DNA of 62,750 nucleotides, the filler included, from Trichosphaerium sp. ATCC 40318 (taxonomy: Eukaryota > Protista > Tubulinea): the NCBI GenBank assembly GCA_038496445.1. It is 3 parts of 3 records of this genome, joined end to end, with 100 filler letters (N's around TTAATTAATTAA, not from the genome) between each part and the next. Parts side by side here need not be neighbours in the genome. Positions count along the whole stretch, not along the records: positions 1 to 30,632 come from JALMLS010000248.1; 2 more parts are not named here. One strand, 5' to 3'. The position numbers and the translations under genes are program-made. Below are positions 104-45,904 of this stretch, piece after piece. The stretch's first letter is position 1, and every line of letters starts with the position of its first letter. The notes beneath the pieces were generated by a model, which saw only the letters and a program-made list of their open reading frames with translations, was not told the origin of the DNA and did not search any database.

Positions 104-487
104 TGTTTTATCTTTGGCTTTTGCTGTATCTAATATACGTGTAGTTTACTTTATAGGCATAGTATGTATATTTATCTTTAATAAAAAAGTTTTAAATTAC
201 TACATCTATTTAAAATAGAAGTTGCATTATGTTATATGTTTTACATAACATCAGATAAAGGTTTTTTAAGTACATTGGAGTAACACCGATAATAAAAACA
301 ATGCGCTAGTTAGTACGCCAGGAAGCGAGAGTTTATGTCTTTTATTCATTTGAACGTTTTTTTTCAAAAAAAGAGTATATTTTGTTTATTTATAATATCT
401 ATATCAAATGGTGAATAAGTAGTAATGATTTTTACCTAAAAAATATAAAAGAATAGGTGGAGAGTGTTATTAAAAATTAGTTTAAAT
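104..487 (+). CDS. rps8: mitochondrial ribosomal protein S8 (cryptogene)
   Basis: Frameshifted motifs LVSTPG(K)R-Y, IIS-SNG, IGGE-LLKI; follows rps14 as in the ancestral spc cluster; boundaries approximate. Confidence 0.65.
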
Positions 488-1754
488 GTTATAGTGTAGC
501 TAAAAATAACTGTTTTGAAATGAATACGTTTATTTGACGTTATTTACGTAACTCAAGAAAAATTAAAGTAATGTGGGGTCGTTAAAAAACAAGTTTTTGC
601 AAGTGTTTTTTTTAAAGTAGCTATTTTAACACTAAATTTTGGTCCGCAGCATCAGCAGCTCATGGTGTATTAAGACTAGTAGTAAAATTATATGGGAAAC
701 TGTTATTGAAATAGATACTCATATAGGTTATTGCATAGAGGTACTGAAAAGTTAATAGAGTATAAACCTACTTGCAAAGTTTGCCTTATTTTGATAGGTT
801 AGATATGTATCTATGATGGTCAAGAACAAGTTTATGTTAAAGCAGTTGAAATTTATTAGGAGTGAGTATCCGTTACGTGCAAAAGTATACGCGTTATTTT
901 TATGGATTAACACGTATTTTAAATCATTTATTGCTCTAACAACACATGCGTTAGATCTTGTGCATTAACACCTTTTCTCTGAGCGTTTGAAGAAGGGAAA
1001 AGGTGTTGGAATTTTATGAAAGAGTATCAGTGCGAGGTTTCATGCAGCATATTTTAGACCTGGCGTTTAGTGAACGATATACACCAACACTAATATCTGA
1101 TATAGGATCTTTTTTGAATCATTTATATATAGAATTTTTGATTAGAAGATTTAATAAGAGATAATAGAATATTTAGCAGCGTTTAGTAAATATAGCTATA
1201 GCACCTTTTAGGATGGCAGTTGATTATGGTTTTCTGGAGTTATTTTAAGTCCGTTGGTTTTTGTTGAGATTTAAGAATCATGCAACCTTACGAGTGTATA
1301 ACTTACTTAAGTTTAAAATACCTGTGGAGTTTATGGTGATTGTATGATCGTTTTATGTTGCGTATTTTGGAAATGAAAGAAAGCGTAAGATAATTAAGCA
1401 GTGTTTAATATATATGTAAAATTTAAATTACAAAGTGTTAAAGTAAATAATTATAAGTATTACCACCAGCAAAGCATTTAATGAAGACAAGTATGAAGCT
1501 ATAATACATTTCTTTAAATATTTTTCAGGTGTCCTAGTGTAAATACGGAGAAACTTATAGTATAGTAGAGCACCTAAAGGTGAATTGGTGTATTTTTAAA
1601 ATCAAATGGATCTACAAGCCGGTGAGATGTCGAATAAAATCACCAGGTTTTTACACCTTCAGGCATTAGATTCTTTATCTAGCATGGTATGTTAGCAGAT
1701 ATGGTTGCCGTAGTAGGATCTTTAGATTTAGTTTTTGGAGAAATTGATAGATAA
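486..1754 (+). CDS. nad7: NADH dehydrogenase subunit 7 (cryptogene)
   Basis: Motifs LNFGPQH(P)AAHGVLRL, HIGLLHRGTEK, PYFDRLDYVSMM, EAPKGE and LDLVFGEIDR* (stop 1752-1754), broken by many -1 frameshifts; start uncertain. Confidence 0.92.
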
Positions 1755-1838
1755 GAATTTAAAAAAATTATTATTGAAATTTATATAGTTTAGAAAAAAG
1801 AGTAATAAAAAAAAAAAAAAAGTAAAAAAAAAAAAAAA

Positions 1839-2072
1839 ATGGAATGACAAATAGTATTAGCAGCAAAAGTATTAGCAGCAGGAGTATGTACTGTCGGTGT
1901 AGGAGGAGCAAGTATAGGTATAGGTATAGTTTTTGGAGGTTTATTAATAGCAGTATCTAGAAATCCTGAATTAGAAGCTAATTTATTTAGAACAGCACTT
2001 TTAGGTTTTGCTTTATCTGAGGCGATGGGTTTATTAGTTTTAATGATGTCTTTTTTAATTATGTATACATAG
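1839..2072 (+). CDS. atp9: ATP synthase subunit c, intact 77-aa ORF (TGA=Trp at codon 3)
   Basis: MEWQIVLAAKVLAAGVCTVGVGGASIGIGIVFGGLLIAVSRNPELEANLFRTALLGFALSEAMGLLVLMMSFLIMYT; RNP loop and catalytic Glu present; no frameshift. Confidence 0.96.
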
Positions 2073-2299
2073 TAAAAAAGACATCATTAAAAGGATAGTT
2101 TATTTTTTATATTAGTAGAATATCGCATATATTCTTTGTAGTTCTGTTTTTTTTTTTTTTTTTTTTTCTATAAAAAAACATCTGTTAGTATAGGGGATTT
2201 TATTTTTTTTTTTTATTTAAATCTTTAAATTTTTTTATTAATTTAAAGAGTAAAAAAAAGTAAAAGTTTTCTATTAGAGTTTTTACTTTTATTATATAT

Positions 2300-4830
2300 T
2301 AAGTATTAAGGGGATTACTAGGTATCAAGAAAAAAGACGCTTTAATAAAGCGAAAACTTTAATTGAGTAGTACAATGCTATGATTTTTAGGTATCTTTTT
2401 AAATTTTTAAAATAGAAAAATAAAAATAGGGAAGTGAAACATCTCAGTACCTATAAAAAAAACATCGTGTAGAAACGTTAGTAGTGGTGACAAATGCGTT
2501 GAGTTCTTTTAAGTAGAGAAAATCGAATAGGCAGTGCCTGCTGCTAAAGTAAGAATTTTTTGATAACCGATAGTGTAAAAGTACTGTGAAGGAAGTTGAA
2601 AAAGATATCGTAGGGATAGTTGAAAAGAAATGAACTTAATACTTTAACGGTTGGAGTATAAAAAAGATATGACAGCGTACTTTTGTATAATGGGCCAATG
2701 AGTATATTTTTGAGCAAGCTTAACTTTAAGGGAGGCGTAGTGAAAGCAAAGAGTAAATCTGTAAAGTCTAAAAAATATGACCGAAACCAAGTGATCTAAC
2801 AACACCAAGTTTTTGGCTGAACCGGTGTCTGTTGCAAGAGGCTCGATGAGTGTTGGTTAGGAGTGAAAGCTAATCAAACTTGGTGATAGCTGGTTTTCTG
2901 CGAAACTTGTTTAAGCAAGCGTATTTTGATTTTGTAGAGTATGGCACTAATATTATTCCGGAGTAACTAAGTTATTTACGGGTATAGTGAAACCAAGATG
3001 TTATAAAAATAAAAAAGTATAGAAAGACTTAGGTGCGAAGATTCTAGTCGAGAGGGAAAAAGCCCAGACTATAAGCTAAGCCCTTAAATAATAATCAACT
3101 GGAAAGACGTAATAAAAGCGGAGATGGGCTAGAAGCAGCCATTCTTTAAAGATGCGTAAAAGCTCACGTATTGTTTTTTAAGCGTCATGATGTAAGGGGC
3201 TCTAAATTATTTGCGAAGCTATAGAATTAATTTGGTAGCAGATGTATTGTATGTAAAAAACTGTACGTGAGTTTGGTTAAAATATCAATAGTATAAATGT
3301 TGCATGAGTAGCTTTATATGTAAAAACATTATTACGAAAGATTAAGGTTTCCTTATCTATGTTAAACAGATAAGGGTTAGCGGTCCTTAAGGGAATGTGT
3401 TTGTAAGATTCCGACTAAGGTTATATTAGTTATATTCAGAGCAATTTTATAGAAATTTAATTACAAAAAATAGTTATTGTAATCGTAAAATATCAATTTT
3501 TTTGTAACTTACAAGAAAAAAATAAAAAAAAAAAACGTACCAATAACCGACACAGGTAATTAGTTGTAGAACAATAAGTAATAGAAGAATAATGCTTAAG
3601 GAACTCGCAAAATAACTCAGTAACTTCGGGAGATAGGTACCTAAAATATTGTTTTTTAAAATAAATTAAAAGTGAAAATAATTTATTTTTAAGAAGTATT
3701 TTGGGGGAAGCGGAACAGAGAAGAGCGACTGTTTACTAAAACACAGGACCCTGCTAAATAGTATATGAAGTATAGGTTCGATGCCTGCCCGTGCTGTATC
3801 GTGAAAAGGATTTGTTTAAAAGCAATGAATATAAGCAGCAGTAAACGCGGCCGTAATCCTTGACGTCTTAAGGTAGCGAAATTCCTAGCTATTAATTGTA
3901 GTCCTGCATGAAGCGTAACGACTCTTCTACTGTCTCAAGTGTTATTTTAGTGAATTGAAGTTTTCGTGAAGATGCGAAAAAATTGCAGCGGGACGGAAGA
4001 CCCTGTGCACTTTACTAAAACCTTGTATGGGTTAAGGAAAGCAAAAACACAGTATAATCAAGAGGTATGATTTAATGGTTTAGGTCATTTAAGGAGCCGT
4101 CAGTGGATATTGATTTTTTGTTGGAAAAATCTAATCTTAGTAGAAATTAAAAATGCATGGTGGATAGTTTGTCTGGGGCGAAGCTCCCTAAAAGGTAACG
4201 GAGTGTACAAAGGCTAATTCAGGACGTTAAAGTTCCGTAGTGCATATGGTTTTTATTTTAGCTGACTGTAAGCTTGAAAGGGTTAACAGGGATTTAAAGT
4301 CGTCATAGTTTTCCGGATGCGCTTACAGGTAGGGCATCCGCAAACGGATAAAAGTACGCCAGGGATAACAGCTTATTGCCTTTGAGAGTTCTTATCTGCG
4401 AGCGGTTTGGCACCTCGATGTCGGCTCATCTCATCCTGGGGGAGTAGGCTCCCAAGGGTACGACTGTTCGTCGTTTAAAGAGGTACGTGAGCTGGTTTAG
4501 AACGTCGTGAGACAGTTTGCCCCTATCTGCTGTGATAAAAATTAAAATTAGAGCCCAATGCAGTACGAGAGAGGCGTTATGGTAATAGGGTGCACCGCTT
4601 GTGGTAGCGTTATCGGTTTTACGTTCCGGTTGGCGTTAAAGCTACGTGCGAAAAAGGAACTGCTGATAACATATAAGTAGAATCTGCTAATTTTAATTTA
4701 TATTTATGATTCAATATCAGGATTAAATATGGTAGTAAAAAAAATATTGTAAAATAATGTTATATATATTTTTTTTACAACTGTAAAAAAAATATATATA
4801 AGGTAGTTTTTTGACTAGATTCCATTAATT
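2300..4830 (+). rRNA. rnl: mitochondrial large subunit rRNA (lacking several universally conserved nucleotides)
   Basis: Conserved LSU blocks GAAGTGAAACATCTCAGTACC, GATAGCTGGTTTTCTGCGAAA, TAAGGTAGCGAAATTCCT, GGCACCTCGATGTCGGCTC, AGAACGTCGTGAGACAGTT; ends approximate. Confidence 0.93.
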
Positions 4831-4899: not shown

Positions 4900-6310
4900 A
4901 TGTATTTATTAAGTTTTTATCAATATTTATGTTACATTAAGAGTGGTCATGTTCAACAAATCATAAAGATATAGGATGCTATATATATGAGCAAGTTTTT
5001 TTGGAGGAGTATGGGAACTATATTATCATGATAATACGTATAGAATTAGGAATGCCTGTCCGTTAATTTTGGTTCAAGATAACAAGTTTATAATGTAATC
5101 GTAACAGCGCATGTCTATTAATGATTTTTTTTTTCGTTATGCCTTTATTAATAGGGGTTTAGGTAATTTTATAGTTCATTAAGTTTAGGGGCCCCGGAGA
5201 TGCATTCCCAAGAGTAAATAATTTAGGTTTCTGATTATTGCGCCTTCTTTATTATTATTAATGTGATCTTTGTTATAGGAGATGGTGCAGAGCAGGATGA
5301 ACTTTATATCCATTACTTTCTGTATTAAGGCTAGTCCTGGAATGTCATAGATGCTTGTATTTTGAGTTGCATATAGCCGGAATTTCATCAATATCGGTGC
5401 AATAAATTTTATGGTAACTATAATGAATATGCGATTATGGATACTTATAGAATTGGTTGTTTGCAGTATCATTTATATAACAGCGGTATTATTATTATTG
5501 ACATTACCTGTTTTAGAGGAGCTTTAGTTATGTTAATAACAGATCGTATTTTAATACAACATTTTTTGATCCACAGGAGGTGGAGATCCTGTTTTATATC
5601 ACATATTTTTTGATTTTTTGGACATCAGAAGTTTATATATTAATATTACCAGCTTTTGTATAACTAGTGTAGTAATTTCTGTTGAACTTATAAAGAGGTT
5701 TATGTCATGATTCTATGGTTTATGCATGGTATGTATAGCAGTTTTAGGATCTATTGTATGAGTCATCATATGTTTACAGCGGGTTTAGATGATGATACGA
5801 GGTATATTTTATGACAGTAACTATGATAATAGCAATGCCTTCAGGGTTAAAGTTTTTGGTTGTTATCAACAATAATGTTTGTATAGTAGAATGAAGAGTT
5901 CCGCTATTTTATGCTGCAGATTTGTACTAATGTTTAGTTTTGGAGTGTAACTGGTATTATTTTAGCAAACGTGTTTTAGATATAGCATTGCATGATACAT
6001 ATTATGTGTTGCTCATTTTCATTATGTTTTATCTTTAGTTCTGTGTTTGGAATTTTTGCGGGTTTTATCATTGAAGTTCTTTAATGTTTGGAAAAAAATA
6101 TCCGATTTTATAGGAAGATTACAATTTTGGGAAATTTTATAGGAGTAAATATGACTTTTTTGCCAATGCATTTGTTAGGATGGCGGGTATGCCCAGAAGG
6201 ATAGTGATTATCCAGATGCTTATGTTGCTTTAAATTTTTGATGTTCTGTTGGGCGTTATTTACTATCTGTGTTTATTTTTATTTATTTTATGTTATATTT
6301 TATGTCTATA
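4900..6310 (+). CDS. cox1: cytochrome c oxidase subunit 1 (cryptogene); 3' end uncertain, may extend toward ~7100
   Basis: [83 protein letters not shown], recovered only by restoring single bases. Confidence 0.96.
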
Positions 6311-7101
6311 GGAGAGTTTTTATATTTTATATTGTATACTCTTATGAAGATGCCTATGAGATTTAGTTGAAGATTACTTTTTAACAAAAGAGAGATCTTA
6401 TTTTTAAAGATAATTATAATTTTGGTGAGGATAAAGTTAGAAGTTTAAATGGTGTATTAGTCTTTAACTGTTTTTATTTTTTCGTGTTAAATCCAAATAC
6501 AGGAATTTTGAGTGTGCAAGTATACCTTTGAATTATGTAAGAAAAGGATTGATGGTGTATCTACTCATTATTTGGTGCTAATATTAATTTAATGTTATAT
6601 TTATCTAGAAAGTATAAGAGGTTTTTTTAAATGGTTTTGTAGTCATAGATAGTTGAAGTTAAAAAAATTTGTATAGTGAAAATAGATAGAAAATCTCTAC
6701 GCTACTCTTCTTTGATTATTTAGTTTTTTTAAATTTTATTAGCGTCTTTTTCTTTCGTTTTTATGATCTTATAAAGTTTTTATTTTAAATTTTATTTAAA
6801 AGGTTTAGTTTTAGAGTGCGTGTTTTTAAACATATAAGAAATTACGTAGATAAATTTATTTTTAGGTCATTTTTTATATCTTTTTAGTATGATTTAATTT
6901 ATATAAAAGTTTATTATAGAAAATTATAATATGTTTTAGTATATATCTTATATACTAAATAATTTTGCGCATATTTTTTGCTTTATAAAAAGTTCATATA
7001 TATAGGAAAATAGGATTGTGCATCCACAAATTTTAATGAACTAAAAATAGGAAAAGTACGTGAAGAGAAGGAAAAAAGGATTACTTTATTATGATTAAGT
7101 T

Positions 7102-7574: not shown

Positions 7575-7665
7575 AGTATATATGCAGTGTATTTTGTGTA
7601 GTGTAATAGAGTAATTTATATAGGTATTGTTAAGTTTAAAATATAAAAAAAGAAGAAAAATTATC

Positions 7666-9072
7666 ATGTTTAATTTTGTAATATTAAAGAAATATGTAAA
7701 AAGTGAGCTCCTATCATTTTTGGTTCTTTGGTTTGTATTGAATTCAATACATTACATGGCGGGGTGTTTTATAAGTGTTTTTAAATTTTATTTTTTATTT
7801 AGTAAAGAATTAGTATTTTATAATAATCCTTTTTTTAAAGAAGATTTGATAAATAATTATGCTTTATTAGCGAAAGGGAGGGTTCATTTTTTTGAATGGT
7901 TAAGCTTCGAGGGGGGAGGCTTAACCTTAACGTTCTTTAATGAAGAAAAAAGCAGAGAAGAAATAGTGGATAAGTTAGACAATTTAGTACCTATAGATCC
8001 AACAGTGGTAGCAGATCTATATACGCAACTAGCTAGCCAAGGATATAGTTTAACTTGAAGCTATAGTGCGTTTGCTTCTATGATCTTATGATTAGTTATG
8101 TGTTCTATTTATTATCATTTTTTTATTAATTCTATGCTTAATTTAGAAGAAATAAATAATTTTATTCTATTTATGCAAAATGATAAAGAGTTTATAAAAA
8201 AAAAAATAGTAGATCATATAGGTGAAATTGAGCAAAGTCAAGATGCTGATTTTTTTAATTTTGTAACTTATACTTTAGAAAACGAAGGAATAATAATAGA
8301 AGAAAGTAATTTGTCAGTTATGTTTGAGAATTTAAGCTGAGTAGAATTTATAATTGAAAATTATGATATAAGTGAAAAAAATGTAAATTTAATAGTAGAA
8401 TTAAAAAAAATAATGTTAGAAAAAAAAAAAGCAATGGAAATAGATAAAGAAAATTTAATTGAACAAACTACTAAATATTTTGAAAATCAGCTAGATATTT
8501 TTTTTAATTATTTAACAAATACTTGTGTTAAACATAACGTTGATTTAAGTATTGTGCAAGATTATCCTAAATGAAAAGAATTTATAAAAAAAAAAAAGAA
8601 AGGTGAAGAATTAGCAGATTTAGAGAGTAGTTACAGTGAAAACATTCATGATGCTGTTTTAAATTTTTCTAAAAATTATGAAGAGAATTTACGTAACTAT
8701 TACGAAAATTTATGAAGAGATATTAAAAAGGATGAACTTGTTTGATGAATGGATTGATATACTATAATAGATAGTATAAATGAAATTTGAAAAGATAAAA
8801 TTATAAGCATGCTTGAAAAAGAAAGAGAGTTCGTTTTTATAGAAACTTTATATTCTTTTTTAGATTTAATTGTTCTTGACAAATTAGTAACTTTTGCAAG
8901 CTTTGGGGAGACTTTTTTTATACTTCCTATTTTATGAATAAGTTTGTCTCCTGTAAATTTTGATAAATTTGTTAATTGACATTATGTATTTTTTACTTGA
9001 CTTTTTAAAAAACTTTGATTTTTTTTAAAAAGATTAATTGAATATCTTTTAGAAAAATTTGGTTATTTCTAA
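7666..9072 (+). CDS. orphan mitochondrial ORF468, unedited, Glu/Lys/Phe-rich with hydrophobic segments
   Basis: Track ORFs 7627-8058 and 8098-8340 join into one 468-aa frame ending TAA 9070-9072 when 13 in-frame TGA are read as Trp. Confidence 0.8.
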
Positions 9073-11257: not shown

Positions 11258-11275
11258 AAAAAGAGTAAAAAAAAA

Positions 11276-11416
11276 ATGGAATGACAAATAGTATTAGCAG
11301 CAAAAGTATTAGCAGCAGGAGTATGTACTGTCGGTGTAGGAGGAGCAAGTATAGGTATAGTTTTTTATTTGTTTTCTTATAAATATAGTTTTAATTTAAT
11401 GGAAAAAGTATATTAG
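11276..11416 (+). pseudogene. duplicated atp9 5' segment fused to unrelated sequence (46-aa chimeric ORF)
   Basis: First 28 codons plus the upstream A-tract are identical to atp9 at 1839; the frame continues VFYLFSYKYSFNLMEKVY*. Confidence 0.8.
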
Positions 11417-11662: not shown

Positions 11663-12733
11663 ATGTTATGAGGAATGGATCCTATGGCGTTAGCTGTGGG
11701 AGGTATTGGGTATGTAGACATAGGTTTTGGTTTTGCAGCCACTTGTATTATAGGAGTAATAGTAGGCGTGATGGTGGTAGTAAATAGAAGATCAGCATCA
11801 GAAGAAGGAGAAAAAAATATAGAAGGAGAAAAGAAAGAAGAAGAAAAAATAGAAGGAGAAAAAATAGAAGGAGAAGAAAAAATAGAAGAAGAAAAAATAG
11901 AAGGAGTAGAAAAAATAGAAGGAGAAAAAATAGAAGAAGAAAAAATAGAAGGAGTAGAAAAAATAGAAGGAGAAAAAATAGAAGGAGAAAATATAGAAGG
12001 ATTAGAAAAAATAGAAGGAGAAAAAATAGAAGGAGAAAATATAGAAGGATTAGAAAAAATAGAAGGAGAAAATATAGAAGGAGAAAATATAGAAGGATTA
12101 GAAAAAATAGAAGGAGAAAATATAGAAGGAGAAAATATAGAAGGATTAGAAAAAATTTTTGATTGAATAAAAGAGTGAGAATTGTATAACAGTGAAAATT
12201 TAAAAATTTATTTAGAAAACAGTGTTTCAGCATTATCTAAAAAAAATGTAGTGTGTTATATAGACGTCTGTATAAATAGTCTGAAATTGAAATTAGAAGA
12301 ATTATTTGCTTATTTTAATACTAAAGAAAACATAAAAACCTTAGATTTAGAAAATTTAAGAGCAATAAAAAAAAATTTATATGATTTGATAGAAGTTTTT
12401 GACTGGCAAGCTACAGATGTAGGAAAACTGTCCAAGTATTTTAAGGATCAAATGCATAGATTTGTGGAGAATAATGCATCGCTATTAGAGGCCCGACGTG
12501 ATTTATGGGCAAAGCTTTTAGAAAAATATGGATTACTGCAAGATATATTATGAGGGATTGTTAAGTCTAGATCAATAATAAAAGAGGCAATAAAAAAAAA
12601 ATTATCAATATTAGATAAAGAAATAGAAAACAGATGAAGCGAATGATTTTATGAAAAAGGCGTTGATTTTTATTATTTTATAACCAACATGCTGGGAAAT
12701 ATATATGAATTTTTTTCTTATTTTTTTACTTAA
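11663..12733 (+). CDS. orphan mitochondrial ORF356, unedited: N-terminal TM segment, acidic pentapeptide repeats, helical C-terminus
   Basis: Track ORFs 11675-12166 and 12182-12553 join through TGA=Trp to TAA at 12731-12733; in-frame ATG at 11663. Confidence 0.8.
11805..12158 (+). repeat. tandem 15/18-nt repeats encoding EGEKI/EGENI/EGLEKI/EGVEKI
   Basis: GAAGGAGAAAA(A/T)ATA-type units iterated about 20 times. Confidence 0.92.
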
Positions 12734-12943: not shown

Positions 12944-13877
12944 ATGTTAGTTATTTTAAAGTTTATTATTTTATTATTTTAATGTTTCCGTTTATTTTTG
13001 CGGAGCATTATTAACTTTATGGAAAGAAAAGTTATGGCTGGTATCAAAGAAGGAAAGGACCTATGTAGTAGGTTTATATGGTTTATTACAGCCATAGCTG
13101 ATGGGTTGAAATGATTTGAAAAGAAACAATAATTCCTCAATACGCTATGGTATTTTATTTGTTTTTGCTCCTTGTGGTTGTTATTTTTATCTTAGTTCTT
13201 TTATCCTTATTACCTTTGTCTTTTAAAATGTAATCATAGATATAGATATAGTTTGATGTTGATATTTGTTATATCGTCATTAGGTGTTTATGTTTAATTT
13301 TTGCGGGTTGGGCAAGTAACTCAAAATATGCTTTTTTAGTGCAATAAGAGCTGCTGCCCAAATGATTTCTTATGAGTTCCTTTTGGTTTAGTTATTATTA
13401 TATTGGTGCTTGAGCAGGTACGTTAAATCTTATAAGTGTAGTTAATTTACAAAAGATACTATTTTATTTTTATATGCGCCTGAGCGGCAATAATTTTTAT
13501 AGTGACAATATTAGCAGAGACTAATAGGCCACCTTTCGCAGATTTACCAGAGGCAGAAGGTGAATTAGTGTCTGTTATAATGTTGAATATTCTTCATGGG
13601 TTTTGTTTGTTTTTTTCTTTCTGATATATAAACATGATTATATTAAGTATTTTGTTTGCCAATTTATTTCTTGGCGAAATATTTTTTTTTATAATGATTT
13701 GTGGAAGGAATTCCTATTTTTTGTATATTAAAAGTTTATTAATAATGCTTATGTTTATTTGGTTAGAGCTTCATTACCTAGATATAGATATGATCATTTA
13801 ATGAGTTTAGGTGAAAAACTTTGTTACCTATAACGGTAGGGTTTTATTGTTTAATAGTGAATAGCTTTGGGAGGTAA
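12944..13877 (+). CDS. nad1: NADH dehydrogenase subunit 1 (cryptogene)
   Basis: ERKVMAG-QRRKGP-VVG-YGLLQP-ADG, GWASNSKYAF, RAAAQMISYE, AETNR-PF-DLPEAEGELV, RASLPRYRYD. Confidence 0.92.
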
Positions 13878-16489: not shown

Positions 16490-16570
16490 TATATAGGGGT
16501 GTAAATTTAAAATTTAGGAATTTTAAATTTACAAGTTGATTTAATTTTTTTTTGCTTTTTATATATACAT
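16461..16570. other. imperfect AT-rich hairpin apex of the giant inverted repeat
   Basis: Core GTAAATTTAAAATT-TAGG-AATTTTAAATTTAC, flanked by a mismatched bubble (~16486-16499 vs ~16534-16545) before perfect pairing resumes. Confidence 0.85.
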
Positions 16571-21614: not shown

Positions 21615-21755
21615 CTAATATACTTTTTCCATTAAATTAAAACTATATTTATAAGAAAACAAATAAAAAACTATACCTATACTTGCTCCTCCTACACCGA
21701 CAGTACATACTCCTGCTGCTAATACTTTTGCTGCTAATACTATTTGTCATTCCAT
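21615..21755 (-). pseudogene. mirror copy of the atp9 5' chimeric fragment
   Basis: Reverse complement of 11276-11416. Confidence 0.75.
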
Positions 21756-21773
21756 TTTTTTTTTACTCTTTTT

Positions 21774-25929: not shown

Positions 25930-26720
25930 AACTTAATCATAATAAAGTAATCCTTTTTTCCTTCTCTTCACGTACTTTTCCTATTTTTAGTTCATTAAAA
26001 TTTGTGGATGCACAATCCTATTTTCCTATATATATGAACTTTTTATAAAGCAAAAAATATGCGCAAAATTATTTAGTATATAAGATATATACTAAAACAT
26101 ATTATAATTTTCTATAATAAACTTTTATATAAATTAAATCATACTAAAAAGATATAAAAAATGACCTAAAAATAAATTTATCTACGTAATTTCTTATATG
26201 TTTAAAAACACGCACTCTAAAACTAAACCTTTTAAATAAAATTTAAAATAAAAACTTTATAAGATCATAAAAACGAAAGAAAAAGACGCTAATAAAATTT
26301 AAAAAAACTAAATAATCAAAGAAGAGTAGCGTAGAGATTTTCTATCTATTTTCACTATACAAATTTTTTTAACTTCAACTATCTATGACTACAAAACCAT
26401 TTAAAAAAACCTCTTATACTTTCTAGATAAATATAACATTAAATTAATATTAGCACCAAATAATGAGTAGATACACCATCAATCCTTTTCTTACATAATT
26501 CAAAGGTATACTTGCACACTCAAAATTCCTGTATTTGGATTTAACACGAAAAAATAAAAACAGTTAAAGACTAATACACCATTTAAACTTCTAACTTTAT
26601 CCTCACCAAAATTATAATTATCTTTAAAAATAAGATCTCTCTTTTGTTAAAAAGTAATCTTCAACTAAATCTCATAGGCATCTTCATAAGAGTATACAAT
26701 ATAAAATATAAAAACTCTCC

Positions 26721-28131
26721 TATAGACATAAAATATAACATAAAATAAATAAAAATAAACACAGATAGTAAATAACGCCCAACAGAACATCAAAAATTTA
26801 AAGCAACATAAGCATCTGGATAATCACTATCCTTCTGGGCATACCCGCCATCCTAACAAATGCATTGGCAAAAAAGTCATATTTACTCCTATAAAATTTC
26901 CCAAAATTGTAATCTTCCTATAAAATCGGATATTTTTTTCCAAACATTAAAGAACTTCAATGATAAAACCCGCAAAAATTCCAAACACAGAACTAAAGAT
27001 AAAACATAATGAAAATGAGCAACACATAATATGTATCATGCAATGCTATATCTAAAACACGTTTGCTAAAATAATACCAGTTACACTCCAAAACTAAACA
27101 TTAGTACAAATCTGCAGCATAAAATAGCGGAACTCTTCATTCTACTATACAAACATTATTGTTGATAACAACCAAAAACTTTAACCCTGAAGGCATTGCT
27201 ATTATCATAGTTACTGTCATAAAATATACCTCGTATCATCATCTAAACCCGCTGTAAACATATGATGACTCATACAATAGATCCTAAAACTGCTATACAT
27301 ACCATGCATAAACCATAGAATCATGACATAAACCTCTTTATAAGTTCAACAGAAATTACTACACTAGTTATACAAAAGCTGGTAATATTAATATATAAAC
27401 TTCTGATGTCCAAAAAATCAAAAAATATGTGATATAAAACAGGATCTCCACCTCCTGTGGATCAAAAAATGTTGTATTAAAATACGATCTGTTATTAACA
27501 TAACTAAAGCTCCTCTAAAACAGGTAATGTCAATAATAATAATACCGCTGTTATATAAATGATACTGCAAACAACCAATTCTATAAGTATCCATAATCGC
27601 ATATTCATTATAGTTACCATAAAATTTATTGCACCGATATTGATGAAATTCCGGCTATATGCAACTCAAAATACAAGCATCTATGACATTCCAGGACTAG
27701 CCTTAATACAGAAAGTAATGGATATAAAGTTCATCCTGCTCTGCACCATCTCCTATAACAAAGATCACATTAATAATAATAAAGAAGGCGCAATAATCAG
27801 AAACCTAAATTATTTACTCTTGGGAATGCATCTCCGGGGCCCCTAAACTTAATGAACTATAAAATTACCTAAACCCCTATTAATAAAGGCATAACGAAAA
27901 AAAAAATCATTAATAGACATGCGCTGTTACGATTACATTATAAACTTGTTATCTTGAACCAAAATTAACGGACAGGCATTCCTAATTCTATACGTATTAT
28001 CATGATAATATAGTTCCCATACTCCTCCAAAAAAACTTGCTCATATATATAGCATCCTATATCTTTATGATTTGTTGAACATGACCACTCTTAATGTAAC
28101 ATAAATATTGATAAAAACTTAATAAATACAT
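26721..28131 (-). CDS. cox1: mirror copy of cox1
   Basis: Reverse complement of 4900-6310. Confidence 0.93.
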
Positions 28132-43522: not shown

Positions 43523-45495
43523 GTGAAAAGTATAAAATGTCCCAACCACAGGTAAAATGTCCCCACTATTCAACACTTTTTTTGAACAAAAAATTGATGC
43601 TACGCTCTTAAAAAAAATACTTTTTTATTCTGATTTTAACATGATGTGTCCATTCGCGTTGAGTACCAGTTACCAAAAGATCGCCCTCCTGTACATTCTT
43701 CTTCGTGCATTTCAACCATTTTTTTTCCATCAAATTCTTTTAAGCAGCATGGGCATGACCCATACTGATCACAGACTTCACACCACACCCACGTAGATCC
43801 TCCCCTCCATATGCGCTCGCCACATATCTGACAGGTCTCACATTCATTTTTGTACTTCTTCTTAGCAGCGGCAAGTTTTTTTTCCTGTTTTTTTTTTCTT
43901 TTTTCTGTCTTGTCTCCTCTCTATGAACATTCTCCTCCTCAATTTTTTTTTGTTTAGCATCTCTCTTGAGTTGCCTTAGCTCTGCCTTGTGTTTAATTTC
44001 TTGTTCTTTATCTATCTTTTTTTTTTTGCTAATTCAACCATTTGGGTAGCAATATAAGCATCCCCTTTTGGTACTGTCATTGGACCGATTGTTAGGGCAT
44101 TTCCTTGATTGCTGTGGCTGTATAGCTCATCAATAGCGTTTTTGGCTTTTTTAGCAGTATCGGTGATGAAGGAAGGTGATTGTTTAGGTTGGACCCCTAC
44201 ATTTTTTGAAGCATGATTTAAGATCAACTGTCTGTTGTAGGGTACAATGCCCACGGACTTCCATGCCGATTTTAAGATTTTGGGAGACAGTGCTTTGGTC
44301 TCTGCAGCTGCAACAGCCATTATGTCATAACGTCGTGTTTTATGTTTGATCTCTGTGCCACTTTCAATTGTAATTTTCCTGTTTAATTTATATGCCTGAG
44401 CTAGGGTAGCAAATGGCTTGTCATCTAAGGGTTGCGTGAAATGTGAGGTATGAGGCACCCATGTGATAGTGTGTACATGCTGTTCAAGGCATTTTTGTAA
44501 CGATTCTGTTTTAATGTGGCTGGCCAATCTATCAAGGAATAAAAATGCAACCCTGTCCCCTTGAAAAATTTTCAAGTGCTTTAAGAACACATCAAGAATT
44601 TTTGGCCAAATTTCGTTGGTCACATACCCTTTACCATGAAATATATAGTATCTAAGCCATGAAGAGCGGGTATTTGTTGGTCTGGGTACTGTCATTTGAT
44701 GCACTTTTTGTTCATCACCTTTGTTTTTTGCTGCCATTATATAAATTGACACCAGTACACGTCCAGAGGCTGAAACAAACGGAATCAACGTGAGAGGGCT
44801 GCTTGTGTTATTGTTCAGCCGCCCAGCAATTTTCATCGTTCTATCTTGAAAGGTAATGTGTTGATACTTGTCACTTGATGCTGTTATCAACTTTTCGTCA
44901 CAATTGAACATCAAATCTGGGTTCATATAATACATCTCTGAGAATCACTCAAAACCATCACACCAAGCTTCTACACGTGGCAGAGTGACAGGAGATACAC
45001 GGCAGCAACGAATTGTCTTCGAAACAGTGGCTTTGAGTTCAATATTGTGTCTTTCAGTGAAGCCATCACACCAAGCTTCCATACTGGTCGACTTCTTCTT
45101 CTTGTAAAGACTTTGTGCCATAGATATCAAGGCTGCACGTGATAGAGGCATATGACGCCCGCTAAAACTCAAACAGTAGCCAACCAACATTTCTTCTTCC
45201 AAATCCGTAAAAAGTTGGTTGCCCTGAGATTTGAAATTCTCCGAATTCTCCTTTGCAAATGCCCTCTGAACACGCTTTCGTAGCGATTCTGATTTAACAC
45301 AGTGTTTTTTAGCCACTGTGATGCAAATTTGACGAATTGAGAGTGTTTGTGAAGGTTTACGCTTCTTTAGTTTATAAAGTACTTCCTTTGTGGCCTCTGC
45401 CATGTTTTTAGCCTTTGTGGCACTTCTGCGAGGCATTTTAAAAATTGAAAAGTGGGGACATTTTACCTAGAATTGGGACATTTTATACTTTTCAC
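43523..45495 (-). mobile_element. pogo/Tigger-like Tc1/mariner DNA transposon with ~50-bp imperfect TIRs and TA flanks
   Basis: TA-GTGAAAAGTATAAAATGTCCCAA..GGTAAAATGTCCCCACT at the left end and its reverse complement ending 45495-TA at the right end; encloses a transposase. Confidence 0.92.
43670..45436 (-). pseudogene. CENP-B-type HTH + DDE_1 transposase with C-terminal Cys-rich (PHD-like) finger; disrupted
   Basis: Catalytic motifs FNCDEK, FLDRLASH, QPLDDKPF; in-frame TGA at 44945-44947; A-tract frameshifts before CQICG..WVWCEVC..CPCC. Confidence 0.85.
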
Positions 45496-45904
45496 TAATT
45501 CTGGTATCTTTTTCTGAAAAACATTTTGTGTTTTGTAGCATTGGCAGTAACGACAATAATCACGTGGTGCCTCTACCAATCAAAAAGGTTAAGTTTTTTC
45601 AAATCGGAGCTTGCAACAGTCGCTTTTTGCCGTGCCTATTTTATGATGACTTAGCCATATTGAGTAATAGTTGAACACTCTTGCAGGGCATGGATCGGTT
45701 GTTTAGTACAGGATGATTGCCTTTAAGTTGAGTTAAAATTTTTGCGTTTTTATAAAAACTACTATAATAACACGTGGTACCATCTCATCGCATCTAGCTA
45801 CATAGTTCGCGTGTTCAGTAGAAACTAAACAATAAACGGTAGTAAGCAACAGATTCATTCAACGACGCTACTGTGCACTTACCTGGTACTAGACCTATTA
45901 AATA

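Follow-up and report, generated by a model that had tools for sequence, protein, structure and literature searches.

Mitochondrial cryptogenes in Trichosphaerium sp. ATCC 40318 and the probable copying of neighbouring bases into their transcripts

Genes and features of the mitochondrial contig

The window, meaning the whole stretch of DNA that was analysed (62,750 nucleotides, filler included), was drawn from an assembly of Trichosphaerium sp. ATCC 40318 that comprises 70 Mb in 642 contigs. The source piece discussed here, contig C350, is AT-rich (72-78%), with a coding strand rich in G. Near its start lies nad7 (597-1754, plus strand), a cryptogene with 36 editing sites, followed on the same strand by atp9 (1839-2072), which is whole at the DNA level, with its 77 codons in one frame. 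The mitochondrial LSU rRNA occupies 2287-4742 (plus strand; Rfam RF02541, 898.8 bits), and a second probable cryptogene, cox1, extends over 4921-6340 (plus strand, ends approximate) with 38-48 single bases missing. A piece of nad1 at 13484-13621 (plus strand), recognised by Pfam (PF00146, E 2.7e-6) and in translations, is in frame and shifts frame at its edges.

Self-comparison shows that positions 2396-30631 form one 28-kb palindrome, centred at about 16515 and with an arm identity of 99.5%; because of this, the GC skew of the contig switches sign at about 16.5 kb. The other arm carries a second cox1 copy at 26691-28110 on the minus strand, a mirror of 4921-6340 in which paired coordinates sum to 33031, and there are zero differences between the arms across the cox1 region (4900-6400). 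Symmetry is imperfect at the palindrome centre, where about 12 nt surrounding a 15-bp hairpin (16500-16535) differ from one arm to the other. Nuclear contig C190 is likewise mirror-symmetric, carrying a cytosolic S13/S18 gene at 3610-4262 (plus strand) and again at 45019-45671 (minus strand), and the duplicate contig C309 folds back at another place (L001 3864-4053). Because of these two cases, the palindromes are likely to be fold-back artefacts of library or assembly, a real mitochondrial inverted repeat being the less likely origin.

Translations indicate that TGA encodes Trp, for example at the start of atp9 and in the cox1 motif FWFFGH; nad7 too has TGA Trp codons. The window also holds several ORFs without assigned identity. 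For instance, frame 1 of the plus strand is open at 7624-8571 and 8791-8934 (about 430 codons with TGA as Trp), with no frameshift and no Pfam match, and is either an unedited URF or no gene; a 143-aa ORF at 7627-8055 gave no match in an exact look-up. At 11672-12163 there is a 164-codon ORF of EKIEGE-like repeats, where an overlapping frame and the opposite strand are open too. A 94-nt stretch at 1830-1923, made up of an A-tract and the first 28 atp9 codons, recurs with 100% identity at 11267-11360 and 21671-21764, and is also present on at least three other mitochondrial contigs (C588, C369 and C291).

Several expected genes were searched for and gave no match. ARAGORN found no tRNA genes across the whole window, a result compatible with tRNA editing or with its absence. 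A Pfam search of the whole genome returned no nad6, and a search of the window returned no rps13, the sole matches being nuclear, on C190; mitochondrial copies of both are probably hidden by frameshifts. No cox2 motif was seen downstream of cox1.

Single-base insertions in nad7 and, probably, in cox1

Being intact in the DNA, atp9 was used as a handle for finding related sequences, and its 90% cluster led to L004, a public JGI contig of 1725 nt (3300016894, Ga0186627_102598) in which a 397-aa in-frame nad7 (PF00346) lies upstream of atp9. The PF00346 frame of this contig defines nad7 in the window, and its editing sites were placed by alignment of DNA with L004 and by run-length comparison. 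Compared with window positions 464-2149 (1686 nt), L004 has zero substitutions and carries single-base insertions, numbering 39 by alignment and 38 by run comparison. Once homopolymers are compressed, the two sequences are identical, with 1150 runs in the same order. Dinucleotide insertions are absent, and the single loss of a base lies in an A15 tract. Two A15/A16 tracts upstream of atp9 (1807-1839), at which L004 is off by one in opposite directions, were treated as length noise and left out of the site count.

The 38 runs that are one base longer in L004 comprise 25 of G, seven of A, three of C and three of T (U). By length, 28 extensions convert a single base into two, eight convert two into three and three convert three into four, the longest edited run being three. 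Thirty-six of the sites fall within nad7, with lengthened runs whose first bases are at 617, 653, 694, 726, 764, 804, 821, 849, 869, 887, 906, 933, 960, 993, 1030, 1065, 1082, 1121, 1141, 1176, 1228, 1249, 1294, 1326, 1343, 1389, 1416, 1457, 1495, 1531, 1547, 1570, 1587, 1618, 1646 and 1682 (all plus strand). Two further G insertions lengthen the runs at 488, in the 3' end of an upstream ORF, and at 593, immediately before the point where nad7 was called to start. Beyond atp9, in the stretch that separates it from the LSU rRNA, a single inserted A turns AA into AAA (2119-2120, plus strand, from the L004 comparison).

All 38 insertions duplicate a neighbour, against a random expectation of 41-42% per site (P ~2e-15). 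The preliminary description of this DNA, made without L004, had proposed that the missing bases mostly duplicate a neighbour; at the observed sites they always do. Several of the nad7 residues it singled out recur here as sites, including DLGA (960), VSGAR (1030), PGG (1065), the C[C]A proline codons (653 and 1082) and ATG[G]AA (1495). A further example, a lysine in RIFKQR, obeys the duplication rule at site 1176 (AG[G]) with a different residue, as L004 reads RIFRQR. Insertions that ignore the neighbour or are mostly C, named there as evidence that would speak against the idea, are not what L004 contains, with C at 3 of 38 sites and the neighbour copied at each.

atp9 provides an internal control: it is unedited, shows no difference in L004, and all 12 of its encoded GG/GGG runs have the same length there. 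Within nad7 itself, 27 GG runs of the DNA and 140 single Gs keep their length in L004. The gene can be translated in L004 only, not in the window DNA, and there are no other indels in its 1158 nt. From its content, we infer that L004 is RNA-derived (cDNA-like) sequence, because 38 indels alongside zero substitutions are unlike strain divergence and because L004 alone is translatable.

The sites in nad7 are evenly distributed. Their spacing ranges from 16 to 52 nt (median 32), with a coefficient of variation of 0.32 compared with 0.95 for random runs, and 20,000 simulations produced no set of equal regularity (P<5e-5). Such spacing is compatible with a process coupled to an enzyme as it elongates. 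Among the 191 runs of G in nad7, 23 are edited, and no sequence motif was found that separates these from the 168 unedited runs in this small sample, the composition of the flanks being similar. The aligned stretch has 25 edited G runs (23 within nad7), and 15 of these have a T directly after them, compared with 70 of the 168 unedited ones. Third-codon positions near the nad7 sites showed no unusual conservation among relatives.

For cox1, the missing bases were approached through homology. In three-frame translation its motifs pass from frame 3 to 2, to 1 and back to 3, with a shift about every 30 nt, and therefore one base is missing at each shift. The gene was delimited by three-frame translation and by frameshift-aware alignment to the cox1 of L009 and L010, two in-frame metagenome sequences that are unrelated to the window and were found by a 28-mer search. 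A Pfam match (PF00115) was obtained on C309, which is noisier and differs from window positions 4900-6400 at 17 positions. The number of missing-base events was 46-48 under a lenient penalty and 38-42 under a strict one, or one per 29-37 nt, and their spacing resembles that of nad7, with a minimum of about 14 nt. Insertions that duplicate a neighbour suffice on their own to yield a stop-free cox1 of about 470 codons.

Different insertion rules were then scored against the references, using a frameshift penalty that replaced a weak, over-fitted one. Duplicating insertions scored above non-duplicating, G-only and C-only insertions, with C-only the worst, even though the duplicating rule has about one-third of the options of the non-duplicating rule. 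The rules separated modestly and were indistinguishable at variable residues, the sole places where duplication was beaten, by small margins. At invariant residues it was the clear winner, namely at PAFG (5658), GHPEVY (5626), FGG (5945), MAFPR (5203), LLPPS (5241) and SLG (6038), in agreement with what had been proposed earlier for PAFG, FGG and SLG. Two cox1 sites that had been listed as better explained by a non-duplicating base need not be exceptions: at about 5347 a copied A or T would give Ile or Leu in place of the usual Val, and at about 5394 a copied A would give Ile in place of the usual Leu, conservative residues with which both sites fit the rule. With inserted bases that are deduced from protein homology, the test is compatible with the duplication rule and is no proof by itself.

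Wider searches for a cox1 cDNA added little. The 28-mer search returned L009 and L010 alone from JGI metagenome contigs and nothing from viral contigs, and a two-part pattern found no edited-like cox1 match in the JGI metagenome contigs. A protein search with a profile of the L009 cox1 and 27 in-frame window pieces was empty, the profile probably being degenerate. L010 (Ga0116229_10007632) is a 17-kb contig with TGA as Trp and an in-frame cox1 beside EF-Tu (tufA). To our knowledge, few mitochondrial genomes combine cox1, EF-Tu (tufA) and TGA as Trp.

Known editing systems and the source of the added bases

In the literature searched, a single organism was found with insertional editing that copies a neighbour, the heterolobosean amoeba BB2. 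Its description reports 475 mononucleotide insertions, 84% of them G and all adjoining an identical encoded base (Yang, Harding, Kamikawa, Simpson and Roger 2017, PMC5421314). Editing reaches 43 of its 44 protein genes, the two rRNAs and half of the tRNAs, with 309 sites in 40 protein genes; no motif was found, and only 0.33% of reads are unedited (PMC5421314). In the model put forward by its authors, the polymerase stutters and reads a single template base two times (PMC5421314). Two other candidates were rejected as matches, as the ascetosporean paper describes substitutions only and the retarian paper one frameshift and fragmented rRNA.

The two systems agree in several respects. Both have single-base insertions only, without substitutions, each copying an adjacent encoded base. 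In both, G leads but A, C and U are inserted as well, the flanks yield no motif, a single protein gene (here atp9) escapes editing, and frameshifted genes are returned to open frames. The two systems differ in density, at about one site per 30 nt in nad7 and cox1 (74-84 insertions in two genes) against an estimated one per 100 nt in BB2, or about fourfold denser here, and in the share of G (66% compared with 84%, P=0.004). The strikingly even spacing also sets the present case apart, a spacing analysis being absent from the BB2 text at hand. In addition, the relatives of the present organism are marine, while BB2 comes from a culture collection and is grown at 42 C, and the nuclear genome here is intron-rich with DHFR and TS unlinked.

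Taken together, the main reading, with a probability of roughly 0.85, is that nad7, cox1 and nad1 are cryptogenes missing about one base per 30 nt, whose RNA would regain copies of neighbouring bases, as an example of the BB2 kind of editing. The observation of the preliminary description is confirmed and its stutter idea is partly supported; both had already been put forward for BB2 and are not new.

Other known systems share individual features with this one. In kinetoplastid editing, U alone is inserted and deleted, under the direction of guide RNAs and after transcription, and many molecules are partly edited. The frames of mitochondrial cryptogenes are restored there as they are here, but U accounts for only 3 of the 38 insertions in L004. 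Mitochondrial mRNAs of calcaronean sponges gain U within short poly(U) tracts. This likewise lengthens an existing run, but involves U only and tracts of U that are already present. Sites in the myxomycete Physarum are spaced at about 25 nt, similar to those described here. Its insertional editing is co-transcriptional and dense in most mitochondrial genes, and antisense guides were not found (PMC3152335). It adds mostly C, plus U and dinucleotides, whatever the neighbour, and 59% of C sites follow a purine-pyrimidine pair (PMC3152335). By contrast, the present insertions include no dinucleotides, are C at 3 of 38 sites and always copy the neighbour, and a C-only rule was the worst for cox1.

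Classic stuttering requires a slippery homopolymer and adds a variable number of bases; neither a slippery tract nor variable numbers of added bases were seen in L004. Paramyxovirus P genes have their sites in slippery A(n)G(n) tracts, where +1, +2 and larger additions arise side by side, as discussed in the BB2 paper (PMC5421314). As in paramyxovirus P and homopolymer slippage, the added base here repeats the template base, G being placed next to G. Unlike paramyxovirus P and the poly(A) slippage of endosymbionts, 28 of the 38 sites are single bases, the addition is exactly +1 in the contig, and dozens of sites occur per gene. This agrees with the earlier suggestion of pseudo-templated insertion with no slippery tract, and the pattern is what a stutter would predict.

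Under such a stutter, the RNA polymerase would reiterate one encoded base in a single, site-specific step during transcription. Exactly one nucleotide would be added per site, identical to the adjacent encoded one, with G at about two-thirds of sites and A, C and U at the others. The co-transcriptional timing, the enzyme and the choice of sites are the parts of this account that we infer. Site-specific reiteration by the transcribing polymerase is moderately probable because the neighbour is copied for all four bases, the addition is exactly +1, the spacing is even and the nuclear contigs encode an RNA polymerase of phage type (PF00940; C209, about 80.0-81.6 kb).

The same bases might be added after transcription by a separate insertion machinery, whether by cutting, adding and ligating or under the direction of guides. 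Kinetoplastid editing demonstrates that such systems exist, and the failure to find a local motif makes a trans-acting specificity factor plausible. There is, however, no obvious reason why such a machinery should add neighbours alone, and do so for all four bases, as at 38 of 38 sites here and 475 of 475 in BB2. Moreover, the assembly contains no edited-like nad7 copy that could act as template, and in BB2 99.7% of reads are edited and guide-like matches were not found (PMC5421314). Post-transcriptional insertion by a machinery other than the polymerase is thus an unlikely source of the added bases.

A much less probable explanation is that the bases are missing from the assembly and not from the DNA, having been lost as homopolymer under-calls of noisy long reads from genes that are truly in frame. 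All differences are changes of run length, a typical long-read error; the assembly is noisy, with palindrome arms 0.5% apart and 47 gaps in 3.9 kb between C309 and C350; and palindromic contigs suggest library artefacts. This possibility, also foreseen in the preliminary description, is contradicted by related organisms. The 3' part of nad7 is covered by six short-read (Illumina) contigs, drawn from ENA assemblies, Tara metagenomes (two scaffolds) and Logan (one contig). They represent at least four related lineages, share 77-86% identity with the window, and all lack the same base at 17 of 17 covered sites while their flanks are 14-23% divergent. The position of a site can be conserved even where the neighbour differs, as at 1587, which is GG in the window and AG in L007 and L002. 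Under-calling would also have had to spare atp9 and the 27 unedited GG runs of nad7, which were called correctly, and to strike 28 sites of 38 that are single bases and not homopolymers. Furthermore, all 36 differences in nad7 go in the same direction and restore the frame. In BB2, both DNA and cDNA were amplified by PCR and Sanger-sequenced to verify the sites (PMC5421314).

That the in-frame transcript stems from another, intact copy of the gene at a different genomic location is more improbable still: mitochondrial DNA is indeed scattered over several contigs with duplicated segments, but a search of the whole 70-Mb assembly with L004 recovered three genomic copies, all of unedited length (a complete second copy 100% identical to the window and a noisy, partial third), with no further match and no in-frame nad7 DNA copy. 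Equally remote is an unchanged mRNA on which ribosomes shift frame at each site, since, although dense conserved frameshifts are known to be read by ribosomes in Perkinsus mitochondria, the extra bases and the intact nad7 frame are present in L004 and the sites share no codon context. For nad7, these results rule out miscalls, ribosomal frameshifting and a second intact gene; by extension, all three are very unlikely explanations for cox1.

Host lineage and wider meaning

Relatives of this organism occur in many marine metagenomes. In the window, nad7 and atp9 are separated by a short A-rich spacer only; in two relatives (L002 611-1516 and L003 233-1516), they are set apart by an ORF of 301-427 codons that matches no Pfam family. 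The nuclear contigs of the present assembly are intron-rich. Four cytosolic HSP70 genes on C8 and C56 (L024-L027) are intronless, with best database identities of 58-73%, mostly to animals and fungi; HSP90, the tubulins and other HSP70 paralogues are in many short exons.

Two classical markers bear on the host. DHFR and TS lie on different contigs, and the unlinked state is that of opisthokonts and amoebozoans, not of 'bikonts' such as Heterolobosea. EF-1alpha is without the opisthokont insertion and reads WWKGPTLLEALD. Because of these two features, the host is probably not heterolobosean and may be amoebozoan, a placement that relies on two sequence markers and not on a phylogeny and assumes that the mitochondrial and nuclear contigs come from one organism. 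On this basis, it is conceivable, and put forward tentatively as less than an even chance, that neighbour-copying editing arose or persists in a second, non-heterolobosean lineage (marine, intron-rich and possibly amoebozoan), at about four times the density of BB2 and with quasi-regular sites 16-52 nt apart.

If this is true, the quasi-regular spacing hints at a ruler in the transcription complex, with a possible link to the similarly spaced myxomycete system. In any case, even spacing and the conservation of sites across species that are 14-23% apart place concrete constraints on any model. A second, far more heavily edited system would allow two mitochondrial RNA polymerases to be compared and shared accessory factors to be sought, and the material for this already includes the 70-Mb nuclear assembly, a transcript contig to match, public runs with several related species, and relatives in ocean metagenomes. 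There are also practical consequences, as the mitochondrial genes of this group resemble pseudogenes in DNA, and barcoding and metagenome pipelines will drop or mistranslate them.
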